The notes beneath the pieces are model-generated. The model made no database searches and was not told the origin of the DNA. It saw only the letters and a list, made by a program, of their open reading frames with translations. Source: Pelomyxa schiedti (taxonomy: Eukaryota > Protista > Evosea). From it: a stretch of DNA of 64,000 nucleotides. The position numbers and the translations under genes are program-made. Shown here piece after piece: positions 2,486 through 15,644 of this stretch. The stretch spans positions 1-64,000 of the forward strand of contig JAHLWZ010000847.1 in the NCBI GenBank assembly GCA_020536535.1, written 5' to 3'. Within the stretch, counting starts at the first letter, position 1, and the number at the start of each line of letters is the position of its first letter.

Positions 2486-4295
2486 ATGAGTGGCGACGGC
2501 AAGACCACCGTTGTTGACACTCCTGGTCGTGACTACAACGGGGAAGAGGAGTACGTGCGGGCGCGCCCACAATCGCAGATGCTGCGGGACCGCGCTGCGT
2601 CGCTGTTTGGCGACAGCGGGGCTACGCACAGCTCGCGGGCTGCGATGCGCCCGTTCGGGCCCTACATCGCGCACGCGTCGGGGTCTCACGTCGTGGACGT
2701 GGACGGCATCGAGTACGTGGACTACACAATGGGCCATGGGGCACTACTTATGGGACACTCGTATGTGTCTGATTTTTGATTCCTGTTATTGGTTTTTTTT
2801 AAATGGCATTTTGTTTGTCTATTGTCATTTTAATTTAATTCATTACTTAATGTGCGCAAAGGCACCCGTCGTTAGTGAGTGCTGTTCAGACACAGGTTCA
2901 GAAGGGTGTCCACTTTGGAAGTAATCGTATGCAGGACTTTTTTCTTTGGGTGCGAAAGTGCACTTATCATTCTTAATCTCCAGACCCTCTTGAGGTGGAA
3001 TGGGCCGAAGCTATCAAAGCATGTGTTCCACAGGCTGAAAGGGTGGAATTCTTTTCTTGTGGACAAGAAGTACGCTACTAATGCCGTACTTTTATTTACT
3101 AAAGTTTCACATAATTCCAGGCCAACTTGATGGCTCTACGTGTTGCCAGACTCCATACTCACAGAAATAAAGTCCTCCACTTCAAAGAGAACTTCCATGG
3201 ATGGGCTGATCAGCTATCATTGAATCCAAATTTCTGTGCTTCGTGCGGAGATACTACTTGTTTTGTGTCCTACAACCTTGAAGAAGTAGCCGCACAGCTT
3301 GAATCCAAACAGTACCAGTAACATTGAGTTGTGTCAGAGGAAAACCTTGATACAATAGATATTCACTGGTAATGGCTGAAGGGGGAGGTGGTCACATGGG
3401 AGGACAGTATCCAGTTGAACCTTCATTTTTACAAAATGTCCTAACGCTCGCCCATGACAATGGGACTCTATTCTTGTTGGATGAGGTTGTTACTGGTATC
3501 CAACTAAATACTGTTCATACCTCCTTCTAATTGTACTTTGCAGGATTTCGCGACTGCGTTGGCGGATTCTCAGAGATCGCACAAATAAAACCCGATCTTA
3601 CTACCTATGGTAAAATAGTTGGAGGAGGGTAAGCTCACTCTCCTAGCAATCTGCAATCTGATTCAGAAATTAGGCTTCCAGCTGGTGTTCTTTGCGGCAG
3701 TGCTGCCTTGATGAGCTTAATTTCCAAGTGTGGGCACACAGGGACATGGAATGCCAACCCCTTGGTTTGTACCTGTGCCTCCGCACCGTTACATTTAACC
3801 AACTTCTGCCACGCAGGCTGCAGCAGCCGGGATAGCCATGCTCAAGCACGTTATAACAGGTGAGCCACAGCGGCAAGCCAATAACATGGCTTCCGTACTT
3901 AGGGATGCTTGCAATGACATCATGCGGGCCAAAGGACTCTGTGGGTGGGCTTACGGCCGCAGCATTGTGCACATTGCCTTGTCCAACCGTGCATTCCAGA
4001 GGAAACCGGACCAAATACACCCCCCATGGGACGACCCCTCAGCCATAAAGGACGGCGGTTGCTTCCACTCCAAGCTATCGCTTATGTTGAGAACCAAAGG
4101 GGTATGTCACTCCCTTCTAATATACCACTTCTAACTTAGAAAAAAAAGATAACAACACTGGGAGGCCGCATGTTCATTGTATCCTCAGTTCACAGTGTGG
4201 CTGACATCAACCAAACAGCCAGAGCCTTTGGTGAATGTCTGGATGTGTTGCTCACAGAAGGTCTTTTGCATCCTGCGGATAGAAACGGGTGGTGA
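2486..4295 (+). CDS. Class III PLP aminotransferase, glutamate-1-semialdehyde aminomutase (HemL)-like, multi-exon
   Basis: Spliced motifs [62 protein letters not shown] (PLP lysine) and GTWNANP. Stop TGA at 4293-4295. Confidence 0.88.
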
Positions 4296-8660: not shown

Positions 8661-10857
8661 TCACAGTCTATTGGTGTAATCCGGTTGCTCCGCTGCTTTG
8701 TACTCCTCCACAAGTTGACACACAACTTCTCTATTGTGAAGGTTAGTGGGTTAAAAGTGGGAGAGGAAAGGTCACCTTGAGTTTTCAAAGTCCTCTAAAC
8801 TGTTTTCAAAGAGGGGTTCTTTCTTGAATGTTCCCAAGAAGGCTTCCCTTTGCCATAACCTATCGAACTGTCTCAAGCAACGCGTGAAGAGCCAAGATAT
8901 AGAGGTGTGATTGGCCATCATAAGTCCGCTGACTCTGTGGGGTGACTTCACGTAAGGCGATTTCCTTGAAAGGGCAACCTGGGAAAAAATGTGTTATGTA
9001 CTGGTTTTGGATTATTTAAGGTACAAACCTGTATGCTTGCTGGACCCCAAGGGATGAAGTTAGCAAGTTTTCTCTCCCGTATTCTTTGCAAGCTGTAGTG
9101 CACCTTTTAGTCCTAAATTTAGGTACATAAAATGTATTTGGATGGTTTACTTGGGTGGGATCGACATCACCTTGGATGATGTTCAAAAGTGAAATGTAAC
9201 ATCCATTTTTGTGTGTTGGACAAGACACGGTGAAGTTTTTTGGTTGAAGTAGCCTTCTCATGACAGATAGAACAGTGGTTTTCCTCACTGCAGAAGCCTT
9301 ATTTATGGTTGGCGTTACTTGAGGGTGGGAAGAAGCAAACTTTGGCTTCAAGTGACCATGGGGTGTAACTTGTCATTAAAAAGTGGCACCTTAAACCGTT
9401 GGGGGAAATAAGGATGGTGAGTGCTGTTAATACCGTGGAGTAGGTATCAGTGAGGCAAATAGCCCAACCATATCGTTGTTCATATATCCTGGGTATCTGA
9501 GAGTTGTTGTTGAAGCCGCCATTACAGTGGAAACCTGCCATGAAATTTAGACCAACAAAAAGCGGGGTGAGGGCTTACAAGAGCGTTGATGTTTTCAAAT
9601 GATCCACGGCTGGAGCAAAAAGTTTGCTCTGTAGCAAGTCTTGACAATGCAATGTTGTCTAGAACAACCTACATTCTAATTAGATGGTAAACGATGAACT
9701 TTGTCATGTGCATACCACACAATCTGCATTTAGGCAAAGTCTCTTCAGAGTAAGAATGGCATTGTATGGCTGTACAACAATATCACTCACACCAACAACT
9801 TGTTGAGATGATTCATCCTCCTAATAGGTGCAAGTGTTCAAAAGAATGAGCACAAGGGTCTGAAGGATTGTGGTGGTGTTTTGTGTCACAAGCAACTCAT
9901 TTTCAAGATCGTTTGGTTTTTTTTGTTTTTTTTGTTGGATGTTAAATGTAGGAAATATTGAGACCTGGTTTGGAAAAACGGAGTAAGTTTGTATCACTTT
10001 CTTTGGGTATTGATCGTTCAACTCTTCAAGTAAGTATGAACCAATGCCAGATCCTGTACCACCACTTATACTGTGGCACAGTACAAATCCCTATTTAATA
10101 AATAGTTAAACACAAGGAGGTAAGAAAGTCCAACGCACTTCTAAACTTTCACTGTTGTCAGCCTCTCGGTCAATCACATCAAACCTAGAAATCCATAATA
10201 AGTCTGAAACAGTAGTTTCTAGGAGAGAAAAGCCAAAAAAAAAAAAAAAAAGACAGAAAAAGTGTTAAAGGTGAGAGGGGGTTTTGGAGTGTACAATTCA
10301 TCATGGAACTTTTTGCCCTGGCTGTAGCCCCTTGCCCAGTTGTTGCCAGCGCCGCTCACGTCCGGTACTTTAATGTTCTCGTGGTTGTACAGCCTCCCAA
10401 AGGGGCCGTTCCTTATCGAGTTGATCACGCCCGGCTCCAAGTCGATCAAAATGGCCCGCGGGATGTAGTGCTCGTCGTCCGACTGGTAGAAAAACACGTC
10501 CTTCCTGTCCGCGCCCCCTCCCATCATTCCCATTCCCATTCCCATTCCCATTCCCATCCCCATCCCACCACTTCCTCCGCCGCCGCCGCCGCCGCTGCTG
10601 CTGCTCGCGCTCGTGGTGGTTGTGGTGCTGCTACTGGTACAACAGGAGCCCGGGGGGGCACGGGGGTCGGGCTGTGGATCGGCGGATGAGGACGAGGGCG
10701 AGGACGAGGCGGGGGCGGTAGAGGAGGAGGAGTCGGGCAGGGTGAGGAGCTCCCCGGTGGGGCTGATGCCGTGCTCGAGGCACAGCTGCTTCCAGAACTC
10801 GAGGCCGATCTGGTTCCCGCACTGCCCCGCTTGTATGGTTATCACCTCCCGCGGCAT
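8661..10857 (-). CDS. TUBG1: Gamma-tubulin, multi-exon, with a low-complexity insertion
   Basis: [33 protein letters not shown]; [29 protein letters not shown]; [10 protein letters not shown]; [18 protein letters not shown]; [11 protein letters not shown]; ends [15 protein letters not shown]. Confidence 0.96.
10520..10567 (-). repeat. (ATGGGA)n coding microsatellite giving poly-MG inside gamma-tubulin
   Basis: (cccatt)n is visible directly on the + strand. Confidence 0.85.
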
Positions 10858-11804
10858 TTCGCCTTTAGATTTATTTTTCCATCGTCGCCCACAAGACAGT
10901 ACAATTTGTTTCTACTGTGGGAGGGCAACCTTGCCATGTGGTGCTCGCAGAGGGGTGGGTCCTGTGATCATACGGCGCCAGTGCCAAGCCCACTTCCATG
11001 GTAAGAAAAAAAAGAACAAGCTTTAGAATTTGAATCGAAGCGTTGATTCAAGTTCAGCAGAGGGTGACACCGCACAGGCTCTTCTCGTCACCATCACATG
11101 AAAATGTTCGAATTGTATCTTGAAAAAAAAATTTTATTATGACAACCACTGGGGCACTGTGAGCAGGAGAGTGCATTCATTGATAGCGTGTGTTGATGAT
11201 GTTGTTGTTGTTCCTTGAGGTGTGAGTGACTCCATTGGACTTCATTGCCTGGCTCTGTTCTCTGTTTGTCAAAAGCATGTTCCTTGAGGTGTGGTAAGCG
11301 GTGCAAACAGTGAAACCCACCAGAGGGAGGATTACCTTCGCACATGAAGTCTATTCTTCTTCAATCATCTTCTTTGCTACCTACTTACATTCCGCAAAAT
11401 TGTCTCACTAAAAAATGTTAATGGGTGGTTTTTCTTGCGGAAGTGAAAGACCTTTTTTAGCCTTTGTATATTCCAAGGTTCCACCGGCACACGTGGAGAC
11501 CCCCCTTCATGACAATGACAATGACATCACAGCCGCTATGGGATATGGTTACTTAACCCAAAATAGATAGAAAATTTCAACCTCTTATTAGTCTACTACA
11601 TGCACCGCACCCACAGAGAACTCAATTATGTGAAGAATGGGGATAAAACATGTAATAAACGCGTAGATATCGGATGAAAATCAGCTACTTGGTAATAAAA
11701 GGGTGTGCTATTATTTTGTTTAGTAGTGAGATTGAGGGGATTTGATACTGCTTTGTTTCGAGTGATGATGGCTCGACTCCACTCCACAGTGACTGTGAGA
11801 GAAA

Positions 11805-12003
11805 CCCAAGAGAGACCCCTTTGAGTTCTAGCACTGGGGATATCTGATGGATGGGTGCATCCGCAGGCGAAAAGGGGGAGAGCCCAACACATCCGTGCCG
11901 CCGCTGCAGATCGAGCACACGACACGAAAGGTGGATGTGATGAGCCCAAGGGGGAGCCCGCAGCATGCACCGCCATCAGCCCACGCTATGGGGGTCCTCA
12001 AGG
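11805..12003 (-). ncRNA. Candidate structured ncRNA, rod-like, about 200 nt, copy 1 (may extend upstream to 12154 via an intron)
   Basis: Nested helices over the whole length, with G-U pairs that work only on the minus strand. Confidence 0.6.
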
Positions 12004-12193
12004 ACGAGAAGGGGGAAATGAAATCTATTTCGATGATGAGAACAAACTTGGGAATGAAATGCCCCAATAGTATTCGAGCTCCGCGAGAGGTCAGGAATTT
12101 GTATCTCACGGAACAGTTAGTAAACACTGTATGAAGGGATTGGATATACTGCCGAAGCGCAATCGATTCCACAGTGTGAGTGTGAGAGAGAAA

Positions 12194-12393
12194 CCCAAGA
12201 GAGACCCCTTTGAGTTCTAGCACTGGGGATATCTGATGGATGGGTGCATCCTGCAGGCGAAAAGGGGGAGAGCCCAACACATCAGTGCCGCCGCTGCAGA
12301 TCGAGCACACGACACGAAAGGTGGATGTGATGAGCCCAAGGGGAGCCCGCAGCATGCACCGCCATCAGCCCACGCTATGGGGGTCCTCAAGGG
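12194..12393 (-). ncRNA. Candidate structured ncRNA, copy 2
   Basis: Same fold as copy 1. It differs by one substitution and about three 1-nt indels. Confidence 0.58.
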
Positions 12394-13795
12394 AAAAAGC
12401 ACCTATTGGGAAAAAATGAATATGTTTAAAACGGGAATGAAATGCCCCAATAGTATTCGAGCTTCGCGAAAGGTCGGAAATTTGTATCTCATGGAACAGT
12501 TAGTAAAACTGTATGAAGGAATTTGGATATACTGCCGCCAATATAGAGATATATATTGTGGCAAGTCCTCATTCCGAGACGAGTGCCCAAGATCTGCGTA
12601 AATTATCGTAGGTAGTCCCATATAGCCCGTTGCTGCATTGCGGGGAAGAGAGTGTACGCGGCGGACAGCCCAGTCCTCGCCACCACCCTCAAAGACGACC
12701 ACTGCCCTTGCTCCCCAAAGCAAAGTGACTGAGTAGTCTCCAAGTCAGTGCCAGTGCCAGTACCACTGCGGGAGTGAGTGCATGCATTGCATTGCCGGGG
12801 AGTTTGGGTTTTTTGGCGGTGGACAGAACTGTCCCACCGCCCTCCCCCGAGTCTCTGCTTCCTTCCGCGAGGTGTTCACGTGCGACATTGTAACTTCGAA
12901 GGACCTGGAAAATAGTTACGCAGCACGAAGGTTGGTGTGATTTCGACGAGGAGTTTGTGTTTGCGTTACGGGTTGGGTTTGCATTGGGTTTGTGTTGCGT
13001 ACCGGGTTGTTTGCGACGCATGTCAGCCGGGGCGATTAATTTGTAAAAAAATGAAAGAAGTGGATCTGCCCTTTAAAAGCATTATTACAATTATAATTTT
13101 GGAAAGCAATTGCGCAATTGTTAAGACTTTGAGATCTCAATGAAGTGTTTCCTATTTATCTATTTTAGCGTAAGATGTCACATTGAAAAAAAAACGGCAT
13201 GTTGTCTTCCACGGGATTGGTTGGGGTGTTGTGTTGTTTGCCACAATCCGTTTTTATACAATCATACTGTCGGTGTCTGCGATGTATTGCGTTGTGTGCA
13301 ACTTGCAACACTGACTGAAGATCCGATCTTGTGGTCGTGGCCGGCGTATGTGCGGATAATCCAAAATTCTCGCCGAACGGAACGGAACAGGACGTGCGAC
13401 CAACAAACTTGTGCTTTTCTCGTGTGTCATCGAATCGTGTTGTGTGCACTACAAGAGGTGGAGGAGGATAATATTATCACGGTGGCTATTGGGTGGGACT
13501 GGGCAATCATTACGTAACGACTGTGCGGTTTGTTCCGTTGCACTCCTCAAAGAGGGACCAACAATCTGGTCTTCGTCGAAATCAAGTTCTCTTGATGCTG
13601 GGGTGTTTAGTTGATGTGTACCCATCGCTGGTATCCTGGGGTGCCCCCAATTTTTGGCTTCGAAGGGGCATTTCCAGGGGTACATCATAAGTATGACGGT
13701 GATCACAAGCTGTTCCGCGACTGCTCACACACTTTTCCAGCAACTGTCGGTCTTCAAGAAACGACCACGAAATCGTTCCATTCTTCGAATTATTG

Positions 13796-15644
13796 ATGGC
13801 GTTCAAAAGTGCAGCGCTTGTGGCTCTTTTTGTTGGCTGCCTTGTCATAGGGAAGACTGAGGGGTATTGGTGTGCTGAAAACTCGTGGGCAGTTTCCGCC
13901 GTGACAGCGTTGGCTGCCACTAAGACAACCGTTTTCTCTGGGCTCACTTACGAGTCGGAATTCGACGACGCTTTCGAACTGCTGTGGAAGCACCTGAAGG
14001 CTTTCTCCAATGGTATTAAAACTTTGTTTGCTTGTTGTTTGTTTTCCCTTCGGACAACAAAAGGATAAAGGCTCCTTGGCAGTTGCACTCACGCCTTTTT
14101 TTTTTTTTTTTTTTTGTCTAGGGTATTCTGGAGTGATATATGTTGGGCAGGAGACGGGAGAATGGTACGGCATTGCTGATTGTTACACTCAATCAACCCT
14201 CCTTGGGTTTCAAGGCTAGTATGGCCCTATTTCGTATCATCTTCTCAATTTCCTCACCTCTTTTCAAGTGGATGCGACTTGATTTCCGATTCGTACAGCT
14301 ATGTTGCCTTTGCTGTGAACGAGGCTGTCTTTGGCGACTCTCATGTCCACTTCTTCGAAACGGATGATGGATCCTACCTGTGGGAAGAGGGTGAATCGAC
14401 CACAGACTATGACCCAACCTCTCGCCCATGGTTTGGACCCAATGTCTCCCTTCTTTGCAGGGTTTTACACCACAAAGGTGGATTACTGGCTGGACTGACT
14501 CGTACGACGATGCTTTATCCAACCAGACATGCAAAACTTATGCTCTTGACATTCCCGGTGGCAAAGTACATCTAATAATAGGCAAATGAAATCTAAGTTC
14601 TGCCACAGGTTGCAGCTGATGCTGTCTCAATAGAGCAATGCCCTGTTGACAATGATTTCGCAGACTGTGACTATAAAATGTTGTGCTCAAAATTAATTTT
14701 CTTTTTTAATGGAATAACAGGGATGAGGATCAACCTGATGAATGTGATCCCTTGTGGTGTTTCGCAGGTAATGATGCGCCAGCAGCGTACTATACTGCTG
14801 TAAATTTGGGTGTACCCTCAGTGGATGAAATTTCTACCGAGGAGGAACTTCACACTCTTGTTTCACTACTGCGTTCTGCACTTGTTATTAACGCTGGTGG
14901 CCCAGTGTCTTCCATGTAATAACTCCCTGAGTGCTACTTTTTATTGATACTATTACCCAGTTACACAGCATTCACTACAAATCAAGATTATGTTGCTGTT
15001 TGCACCTGCGAATCTTGGATCTTTGGGGATACTGATAAATGTGACGACACAAATTGGATACTCAAACTCAGAGTTTTTATCCTGCCACTATTTCTACCCC
15101 CTCTTAGTTTCTTCTCCAGAGTGAAAACCTATTGGATGATGAGAAGGTTCACTTATTCCCAGTGGATGATTCCGGCGATTTTGACCTTACAGATGAGATG
15201 GAAGTGAGGAACCCTTTTTTTTCACCCCTTCAAACTCGGCTTAACCTCTTGCATTTTTCTTCCTGGCTCTTTTTTGGTAGAGCTATGCCTACACCTATGA
15301 TCCGACTATTCGGCCTTGGTACTTGCAGGCCACTGCCCGTCATGGTAACTGTTATTTTCGAATGTGTACCTACACACTCACTGTACTTCAGAGGAGGGAT
15401 GGGCACCAATTTACACCTACGCAAGCTATGATGTCCAAGGACTCACCTTTACTGGCAACTATGATTCCTCAGGTTTGGGGATGAATTCACACTACACCTC
15501 CCACAAAAACAACCTGAATTCCTAACCAAACCCACACCAGATGTTGTCATAGCAGTTGATTCGTTCTCCATCTGTTCCGGTGTCAGTCTCTCAGTCACTG
15601 GCCTCCTTCTTCTCGCCGCAGTTCTCTGCGTTCTTTTCCTTTAA
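13796..15644 (+). CDS. Secreted or surface-anchored protein with two Cache-type ligand-binding motifs and a hydrophobic C-terminus (GPI-signal-like)
   Basis: Signal peptide MAFKSAALVALFVGCLVIG; YDPTSRPWF..GWTDSY..VAAD and YDPTIRPWY..GWAPIY..VIAVD; ends LLLLAAVLCVLFL*. Confidence 0.7.

Follow-up and report, generated by a model that had tools for sequence, protein, structure and literature searches.

The stretch from 11805 to 12393 of the window (the whole 64,000-nt stretch of Pelomyxa schiedti DNA analysed here, contig JAHLWZ010000847.1, positions 1 to 64,000) contains two similar sequences that fold into long interrupted hairpins when read on the minus strand. The initial annotation had taken them for a tandemly duplicated gene of an unclassified, rod-shaped RNA. 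The locus raises the question of whether these hairpins act as RNA and, if so, as what kind of RNA, or whether their symmetry has some other origin.

Fold and strand preference of the two hairpins

On the minus strand, hairpin a (11814–11996) and hairpin b (12203–12385) each form a core rod of 183 nt that runs from GACCCC to GGGGUC, with a minimum free energy (MFE) of −87.9 kcal/mol (62 bp, 8 of them G-U) and −86.8 kcal/mol (61 bp, 7 G-U), respectively. All the helices that had been read from the sequence by eye recur in the minus-strand MFE fold, as do the bubble of facing C/U-rich strands and the small two-step apex. Hairpin a is divided on this strand into a 5′ island (11973–11996), a 5′ arm (11922–11972), an apex (11897–11921), a 3′ arm (11839–11896) and a 3′ island (11814–11838); the islands of hairpin b lie at 12362–12385 (5′), 12287–12311 (apex) and 12203–12227 (3′), also on the minus strand. 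In the C/U-rich internal bubble of hairpin a, the 5′-side strand (CUCCCCCUU on the RNA; 11948–11956, minus) is unpaired in both the MFE and the consensus folds, and the 3′-side strand lies at 11868–11880 (minus). Covariance model R1, built from the family alignment of 15 sequences described below, scored 231 bits for hairpin a and 233.7 bits for hairpin b.

When RNAfold was applied to both strands of 11800–12010, the minus strand gave a single interrupted rod of −97.2 kcal/mol (z = −4.99), and none of 200 dinucleotide shuffles folded as well, whereas the plus strand reached −78.3 kcal/mol (z = −1.62). The reverse complements of hairpins a and b contained 3 and 2 G-U pairs, and their folding energies were 12–17 kcal/mol worse. 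A scan of the sequence from 10900 to 13650 in sliding 200-nt windows gave z values below −3 on the minus strand only at hairpins a and b (−5.4 at hairpin b). The sole strong folding signal besides the hairpins was on the plus strand at 12650–12849 (z = −4.0 versus −1.9 on the minus strand), and overlaps an upstream block that is conserved between subfamilies A and B of the family.

Two known structural motifs were considered for parts of the rod and rejected. A K-turn at CUGAUGG / CCAUCAG is contradicted by the fold, in which this segment is a plain helix. An ENE-like triple-helix clamp at the pyrimidine bubble was rejected by reasoning only: both strands of the bubble read as a C-run followed by a U-run in the 5′-to-3′ direction, a polarity that does not suit a Y-R-Y triplex on a single purine strand.

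A family of 15 hairpins within a larger non-coding repeat

The assembly derives from amplified single cells of Pelomyxa schiedti and comprises 52.4 Mb in 5337 scaffolds (PMC8887013). Searching all of it (52,367,397 bases, 5337 contigs) by BLAST with the 385-nt unit as query, by an exact 19-mer from the 3′ base with 2 mismatches allowed, and by model R1 returned the same set of 15 hairpins at 10 loci. Rather than a gene in two copies, as first proposed, the locus holds members of a 15-member family that sit inside a larger conserved unit and a 2.43-kb dispersed repeat. Subfamily A has 10 copies (two each on contigs C847, C989, C1067 and C994; one each on C820 and C234), and subfamily B, which is ~74% identical to A, has 5 (one each on C2071, C940 and C632; two on C474). 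Rods are ~183–207 nt long across the family, and those of B, at 201–207 nt, have the same architecture as those of A. The C632 hairpin (L026:7841–8001) has lost its apical half at a locus that abuts an N-run and a G-run (assembly gap), and 13 nt of the 3′ arm are missing from the second C989 copy (L021:6063–6255).

No solitary hairpin was found in the genome: all 15 lie within the conserved unit and have homologous flanks on both sides. Beyond these flanks, the copies adjoin differing, ordinary host genes, namely γ-tubulin in the window and ankyrin and Sel1-repeat genes elsewhere. Contig ends cut 6 of the 10 loci, and every locus is at most 13.5 kb from a contig end. A subtelomeric location was nevertheless rejected, as the three contig ends read (C847, C989 and C474) carried no telomere-like repeats in this fragmented assembly. 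Two scans of metagenome collections gave 0 hits and 28 17-mer hits attributable to chance, of which the model confirmed none, and two scans of viral collections returned chance matches only; this absence of relatives is weak evidence, because few protist genomes are contained in the collections searched.

The tandem duplication that had been noted in the window was borne out. Two units of ~385 nt each (~385–390 nt), consisting of leader, hairpin and tail, occupy 11778–12540 on the minus strand (11778–12162 and 12163–12540) and are linked by direct repeats D1–D6 and D9 at a spacing of 382–390. They are 88% identical over the whole unit, 97–100% in the hairpin parts and 76–93% in the remainder, and one-base indels separate the two copies. 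A TATA-like block (TTGYCACAAYA ... TATATATTGG; 12538–12565, minus) lies ~155 nt 5′ of hairpin b and is found at the same distance in subfamilies A and B; it is a candidate promoter. Further upstream is the 45-nt block shared by A and B at 84% identity (12647–12691, minus). The leader contains a small stem-loop, ACAGUU-UUACY-AACUGU (12496–12512, with a second copy at 12113–12130, minus), which is present in 15 of 15 units and is retained in the consensus fold of the whole unit; that fold contained no further conserved helices between leader and tail. The tail 3′ of the rod is 55–75 nt long and is followed by an intron-like module.

Both units are carried by a 2.43-kb dispersed repeat, the subfamily A element (11105–13535, minus), at whose limits homology to other contigs stops. 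It consists of the two units, ~1 kb of upstream and 0.67 kb of downstream sequence, with an AATAAA at 11133–11138 near its 3′ end. Another copy of the element, at C989:4584–7010, is 83% identical over 2460 nt. The 5′ limit is the same in the three copies that retain it, the 3′ limits vary among copies, and family copies are 84–92% identical with internal deletions and tandem variants. Two forms of the spacer define two unit types, both of which occur in every A element. The diverged spacer was considered as an intron and rejected, since its GT..AG is absent from subfamily B. Hairpins are spaced by 811–877 nt in C1067, C994 and C474 versus 385–390 nt elsewhere, which suggests an older unit of ~0.8 kb followed by unequal crossovers. 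DNA depth over the element was 3–6 times that of its flanks in three DNA runs from one study.

The element is non-coding. Between two A copies, 8 of 55 indels were multiples of 3, substitutions showed no period-3 pattern, and all six frames matched equally when A was compared with B, in agreement with the earlier remark that indels rule out a shared open reading frame. The open frame across the rod also drew a blank in a protein word search, and a protein-coding exon was rejected on these grounds. No tRNA genes or tRNA-like parts were found in the element.

Other features of the element and its surroundings were recorded. Outside the hairpins, conservation within the A element peaks at 11330–11540 on the minus strand (element positions ~2000–2200), a segment that is 95–99% identical between copies and holds two more GT..AG stretches of ~45–52 nt that resemble the introns of this genome. 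In subfamily B and in those A units whose hairpins are widely spaced, the intron-like module is followed by a microsatellite of the GATGTGAC / GACGTGAC type, the length of which varies (L025, about 3720–3800, and equivalents in C632, C2071, C1067 and C994). The element ends ~250 nt upstream of the start codon of the γ-tubulin gene (8690–10857, minus), which has the same orientation. This gene has ~10 short introns, mostly of 43–48 nt with one of ~115 nt, and its exon 1 has a long low-complexity insert of Ser/Thr/Gly and Met-Gly.

Conserved islands, strand bias and the intron-like module

In the alignment of the 15 sequences, three islands of ~25 nt each, at the 5′ base, the apex and the 3′ base, are essentially invariant. 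The base consists of an invariant 6-bp clamp, an asymmetric internal loop of CA opposite GAACUCAAA (2 nt opposite 9 nt) and a 9-bp helix, and the apex of an invariant 11-bp stem with the 8-nt loop CGAUCUGC; the apex is non-palindromic. Majority differences between A and B fall in 1 of 78 island columns versus 57 of 143 arm columns (p = 4e-12). We also counted substitutions private to single copies, the class expected to be uniform if the copies were decaying neutrally. In subfamily A these hit 1 of 76 island and 11 of 107 arm positions (p = 0.016), and in subfamily B 0 of 78 and 9 of 131 (p = 0.028). Within A, variable columns make up 4–7% of the islands, compared with 50% of the leader, 77% of the spacer and 83% of the tail. 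This pattern of purifying selection on the three islands argues for a function.

The arms have changed at 40% of their positions and the rod is still paired in both A and B. The strands of the C/U-rich bubble vary in run length by copy and are longer in B, up to U9. Standard pairs make up 98.7% of the 840 cells of the consensus structure, versus 37–51% when partners are slid by 1–3 columns. Since the majority of pairs are constant, covariation is weak: both partners changed in 3 pairs, two of which lie outside the core, and shuffle controls were mixed. On the minus strand, the pairs that do vary passed through G-U in 11 cases and through A-C in 2, and the mirror analysis of the plus strand gave 7 and 3. 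The consensus energy is −61.4 kcal/mol on the minus strand versus −45.2 kcal/mol on the plus strand, where the reverse complement still yields a consensus of 54 pairs. All 10 A copies fold better on the minus strand by 5–17 kcal/mol, with 5–8 G-U pairs versus 1–3, whereas the B copies fold equally on both strands, so that the strand-specific fold proposed earlier holds for subfamily A and not for B. The accompanying claim, that the G-U pairs reflect selection on RNA, agrees with the 8 and 7 G-U pairs of the window hairpins versus 3 and 2 in their reverse complements; overall, selection on a minus-strand RNA is the preferable reading, short of proof.

A GU...ACUAA...YAG module of 41–45 nt occurs at the same place after 14 of the 15 hairpins. 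The module after hairpin a (11708–11748, minus) reads GUAUCA ... CUACUAAAC ... UAG over 41 nt. The one after hairpin b (12105–12149, minus) reads GUAUAU ... UUUACUAAC ... GAG over 45 nt, is also the start of the next tandem unit, and has a homologous copy at 12488–12532 (minus). From the branch site to the AG, the module varies in sequence and keeps its length. The introns of the neighbouring γ-tubulin gene are mostly 43–48 nt with loose GUNNNN and CUAAY signals. By these comparative criteria the module is a plausible intron. Short words resembling U6 also follow some copies: 11 nt identical to part of the U6 5′ stem-loop after hairpin b (12150–12160), and a ACGAUACAGA-AGAU stretch that is U6-like (ACAGA-like) after B copies such as those of L026 and L011. 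The U6 covariance model gave no match to the downstream module, and the resemblance is probably due to chance.

The RNA sample consisted of one run, a small single-cell library, and was available as assembled contigs. No RNA contig from this run lay on either hairpin, and contigs of two paralogues (one of type A, the other corresponding to the B-type copy on C940) covered the stretch just 3′ of the hairpin. RNA is accordingly seen for the 3′ flank of paralogues and not for the rod itself. Structured RNA that is not polyadenylated is poorly represented in single-cell libraries of this kind, and repeats interrupt contigs, so the gap at the hairpin neither confirms nor excludes the RNA. Both contigs that cross the intron-like module were unspliced, which counts against efficient splicing of the module.

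Known classes and competing explanations

The hairpins matched none of the 4227 families of Rfam 15 at E ≤ 10, either in the window from 10500 to 13800 or at 8 other family loci (52 kb), which upholds the earlier observation that hallmarks of SRP RNA, U1–U6, RNase P and the hammerhead are missing. A weak match to the Class I RNA model (RF01414; E = 5.2) lay elsewhere, in a flank. The genome does contain recognisable small RNA genes. U6 snRNA is present at ~20 loci (on contigs including C720, C819, C496, C596, C694, C852 and C93; L027–L034), and 8 of the 8 loci examined have a ACCCATAA(T) element ~60 nt upstream and a T-run terminator. SRP RNA genes of 257–285 nt are present at 6 loci on other contigs (69–80 bits; 5 of 6 over the 70-bit cut-off), and both loci examined have a like CCCATAAG motif just upstream and a T-run. 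No such upstream element was found near the family in the window, and no run of T4 or longer lies 3′ of the rod; the B rods contain an internal T9. A T9 inside a transcript would stop Pol III. A Pol III small RNA (U6, 7SK, Y or vault-like) was rejected because the upstream element and the T-run of this genome are missing and B has the internal T9.

Further classes were rejected. An SRP RNA or Alu-like origin is contradicted by the location of the SRP genes elsewhere, by the lack of similarity beyond chance words and by the lack of a match to the SRP model. A MITE would require terminal inverted repeats (TIRs) and target-site duplications (TSDs), neither of which was seen at the copies, and the hairpins are never solitary and have homologous flanks in all 15 cases. 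A SINE or LINE-dependent retroposon was rejected for want of an A-tail, a duplication, a tRNA-like part or 7SL similarity. An LTR or solo LTR was rejected because the ends are AGAACAAA.. and ..CAACAGTA and not TG..CA, without duplication, and because the only paired copies are internal tandem ones. As for a self-cleaving ribozyme, viroid-like RNA or retrozyme, no ribozyme model matched and the rod makes up only ~200 of 385 nt.

The family also resembles known systems in part. Like the Y and vault RNAs, the rod has 5′ and 3′ ends that pair in a basal stem which, together with its bulge or loop, is conserved, a variable pyrimidine-rich unpaired middle and several gene copies, and it would presumably bind protein rather than pair with targets. 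Y and vault RNAs are ~85–140 nt long, made by Pol III, and end in a U-run. The Pelomyxa rod, in contrast, is 183–207 nt long, has T4–T9 runs inside and has neither the Pol III upstream element nor the terminal T-run; the Y_RNA and Vault models of Rfam gave no match to the hairpins at E ≤ 10. With SRP RNA (7SL) and Alu-like RNAs it shares the plan of a multicopy rod whose conserved ends and apex are joined by a long interrupted helix, but the 257–285-nt SRP genes at 6 other loci have no similarity to it. The Class I RNAs of Dictyostelium (RF01414) are likewise an Amoebozoa-restricted multicopy non-coding RNA of obscure ancestry with a terminal stem and conserved islands; their model spans 56 positions and has no match to the hairpins, and the rod is more than three times longer. 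MITEs and SINEs are also dispersed short hairpin-forming repeats, but the Pelomyxa hairpin never occurs alone and has no TIR, TSD, A-tail or tRNA-, 7SL- or 5S-like parts.

The reading we tentatively favour, at somewhat short of an even chance, is a lineage-specific multicopy structured non-coding RNA module that is part of a Pol II-type transcript and scaffolds proteins. The RNA would be read from the minus strand of the window within a longer non-coding transcript unit of Pol II type. The ancestral unit of ~0.8 kb may have comprised the TATA-like block, a leader of ~140 nt with its stem-loop, the rod of 183–207 nt, a tail of 55–75 nt and a short intron. A Pol II-like context is suggested because the TATA-like block is conserved in A and B and an intron-like module of usual size follows 14 of 15 hairpins. 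The rod would most likely be a protein scaffold, in which the invariant base (clamp, loop and helix) and the apex are predicted to be sequence-specific protein-binding sites. The arms would act as a structurally conserved spacer between base and apex, changing in sequence while pairing is kept, and pyrimidine or poly(C) binding proteins could plausibly attach to the two C/U-rich single strands that face each other. Against an RNA module count the RNA contigs, none of which lies on the hairpin or is spliced at the module, the weak covariation, the strand symmetry of the B copies, and the dispersal in a 2.43-kb repeat, often at contig ends, as would be expected of a mobile element.

That dispersal is the basis of the principal alternative, which we regard as rather unlikely: the hairpin may be the cis-acting signal of a non-autonomous mobile or self-spreading repeat, recognised as RNA or single-stranded DNA structure by a trans-acting enzyme of replication or transposition. 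Conservation of the islands would in that case arise since only copies that keep them propagate. The ten dispersed loci beside unrelated host genes (γ-tubulin, ankyrin, Sel1-repeat), the identical 5′ limit of the three A elements that retain it, the 84–92% identity of copies with internal deletions and tandem variants, the 6 of 10 loci cut by contig ends and the raised DNA depth all fit such a repeat. The initial annotation had held that many dispersed copies with TSDs would indicate a SINE or MITE; the copies are indeed dispersed, but they have no TSDs or TIRs and no hairpin is solitary. LTRs (TG..CA ends, paired copies), poly(A) tails and tRNA-like parts are missing as well, no transposase or reverse-transcriptase open reading frame lies inside or beside any copy, the 3′ limits are unequal between copies and the copy number is low. 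In addition, copy-private substitutions avoid the islands, unlike in dead insertions, although gene conversion could mimic this. The symmetry could also act at the DNA level, as a cruciform or symmetric protein site in a promoter, origin or recombination signal, with RNA folding incidental. The equal folding of both strands in B, the 54-pair consensus of the reverse complement and the RNA contigs that start immediately 3′ of the hairpin, as though transcription began downstream of it (contig ends being unreliable), would agree with this idea, but we consider it very unlikely: the minus strand is favoured by 5–17 kcal/mol in 10 of 10 A copies (G-U 5–8 vs 1–3), variable pairs on that strand passed via G-U 11 times and via A-C twice, and invariant asymmetric loops (2 nt vs 9 nt) and a non-palindromic apex are needless in a symmetric site.

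Two further explanations were weighed. Cut from a Pol II transcript and loaded onto Argonaute, the rod could be a small-RNA precursor (miRNA-like or hairpin siRNA). In favour of this are the length and imperfect pairing of a hairpin within what is probably a Pol II non-coding transcript, and the presence in the genome of Piwi-domain proteins (at least 4 loci) and RNase III-domain proteins (2 loci). Cleavage would also fit RNA contigs in which the flank is present and the hairpin missing. Its conservation, however, is the opposite of that expected for a miRNA-like precursor, with base and apical loop invariant and arms variable. With up to 2 mismatches allowed, the 3′ island has no further match or complement among the 19-mers of the genome and so no obvious target, and we give this explanation, too, a very small probability. 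Whole-genome amplification of single cells can produce inverted chimeras. An artefact of this kind, or a neutrally decaying duplicate with no function, comes to mind for an assembly from amplified single cells (PMC8887013), but is extremely improbable in view of fifteen diverged copies in two subfamilies with one architecture, islands that are invariant beside sequence diverged by up to 40%, and the presence of the element in three separate DNA runs.

Within the RNA reading, a more specific version, which we rate as quite unlikely, draws on an analogy. The 3′ end of fungal telomerase RNA is set by spliceosome-mediated processing (PMC4299874), and there, too, a conserved 5′ splice site and a strong branch site lie a short distance behind a structured non-coding RNA made by Pol II; the putative intron of the Pelomyxa unit appears to be retained in RNA contigs. 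By this analogy, the family could be a previously undescribed ribonucleoprotein RNA of Archamoebae, whose mini-intron helps rod maturation or the setting of the 3′ end with assistance from the spliceosome, and whose dedicated proteins would be recruited by the invariant modules at base and apex. The likeness is purely one of analogy; the Pelomyxa family has 15 copies versus one, and no Sm site or template was identified in it.

The fold, the family, the pattern of selection and the lack of coding capacity are shown, whereas transcription, the polymerase, protein binding, the role of the intron and hence the function are inferred. In kind, a lineage-restricted multicopy structured non-coding RNA is familiar; what is new is its anatomy, an unusual combination of a long exonic rod, in which three islands are invariant, with two C/U bubbles and an intron-like module after 14 of 15 copies. 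Almost nothing is known of the non-coding RNAs of free-living anaerobic amoebae. The signature of selection together with the lack of an Rfam counterpart makes the family a concrete, testable candidate for a new ribonucleoprotein, and if it should be a mobile element instead, it would lack all of the end signatures that such elements usually have. For annotators, the 10 loci are neither junk hairpins nor amplification artefacts, and model R1 provides a handle for searching the genomes of other Archamoebae.
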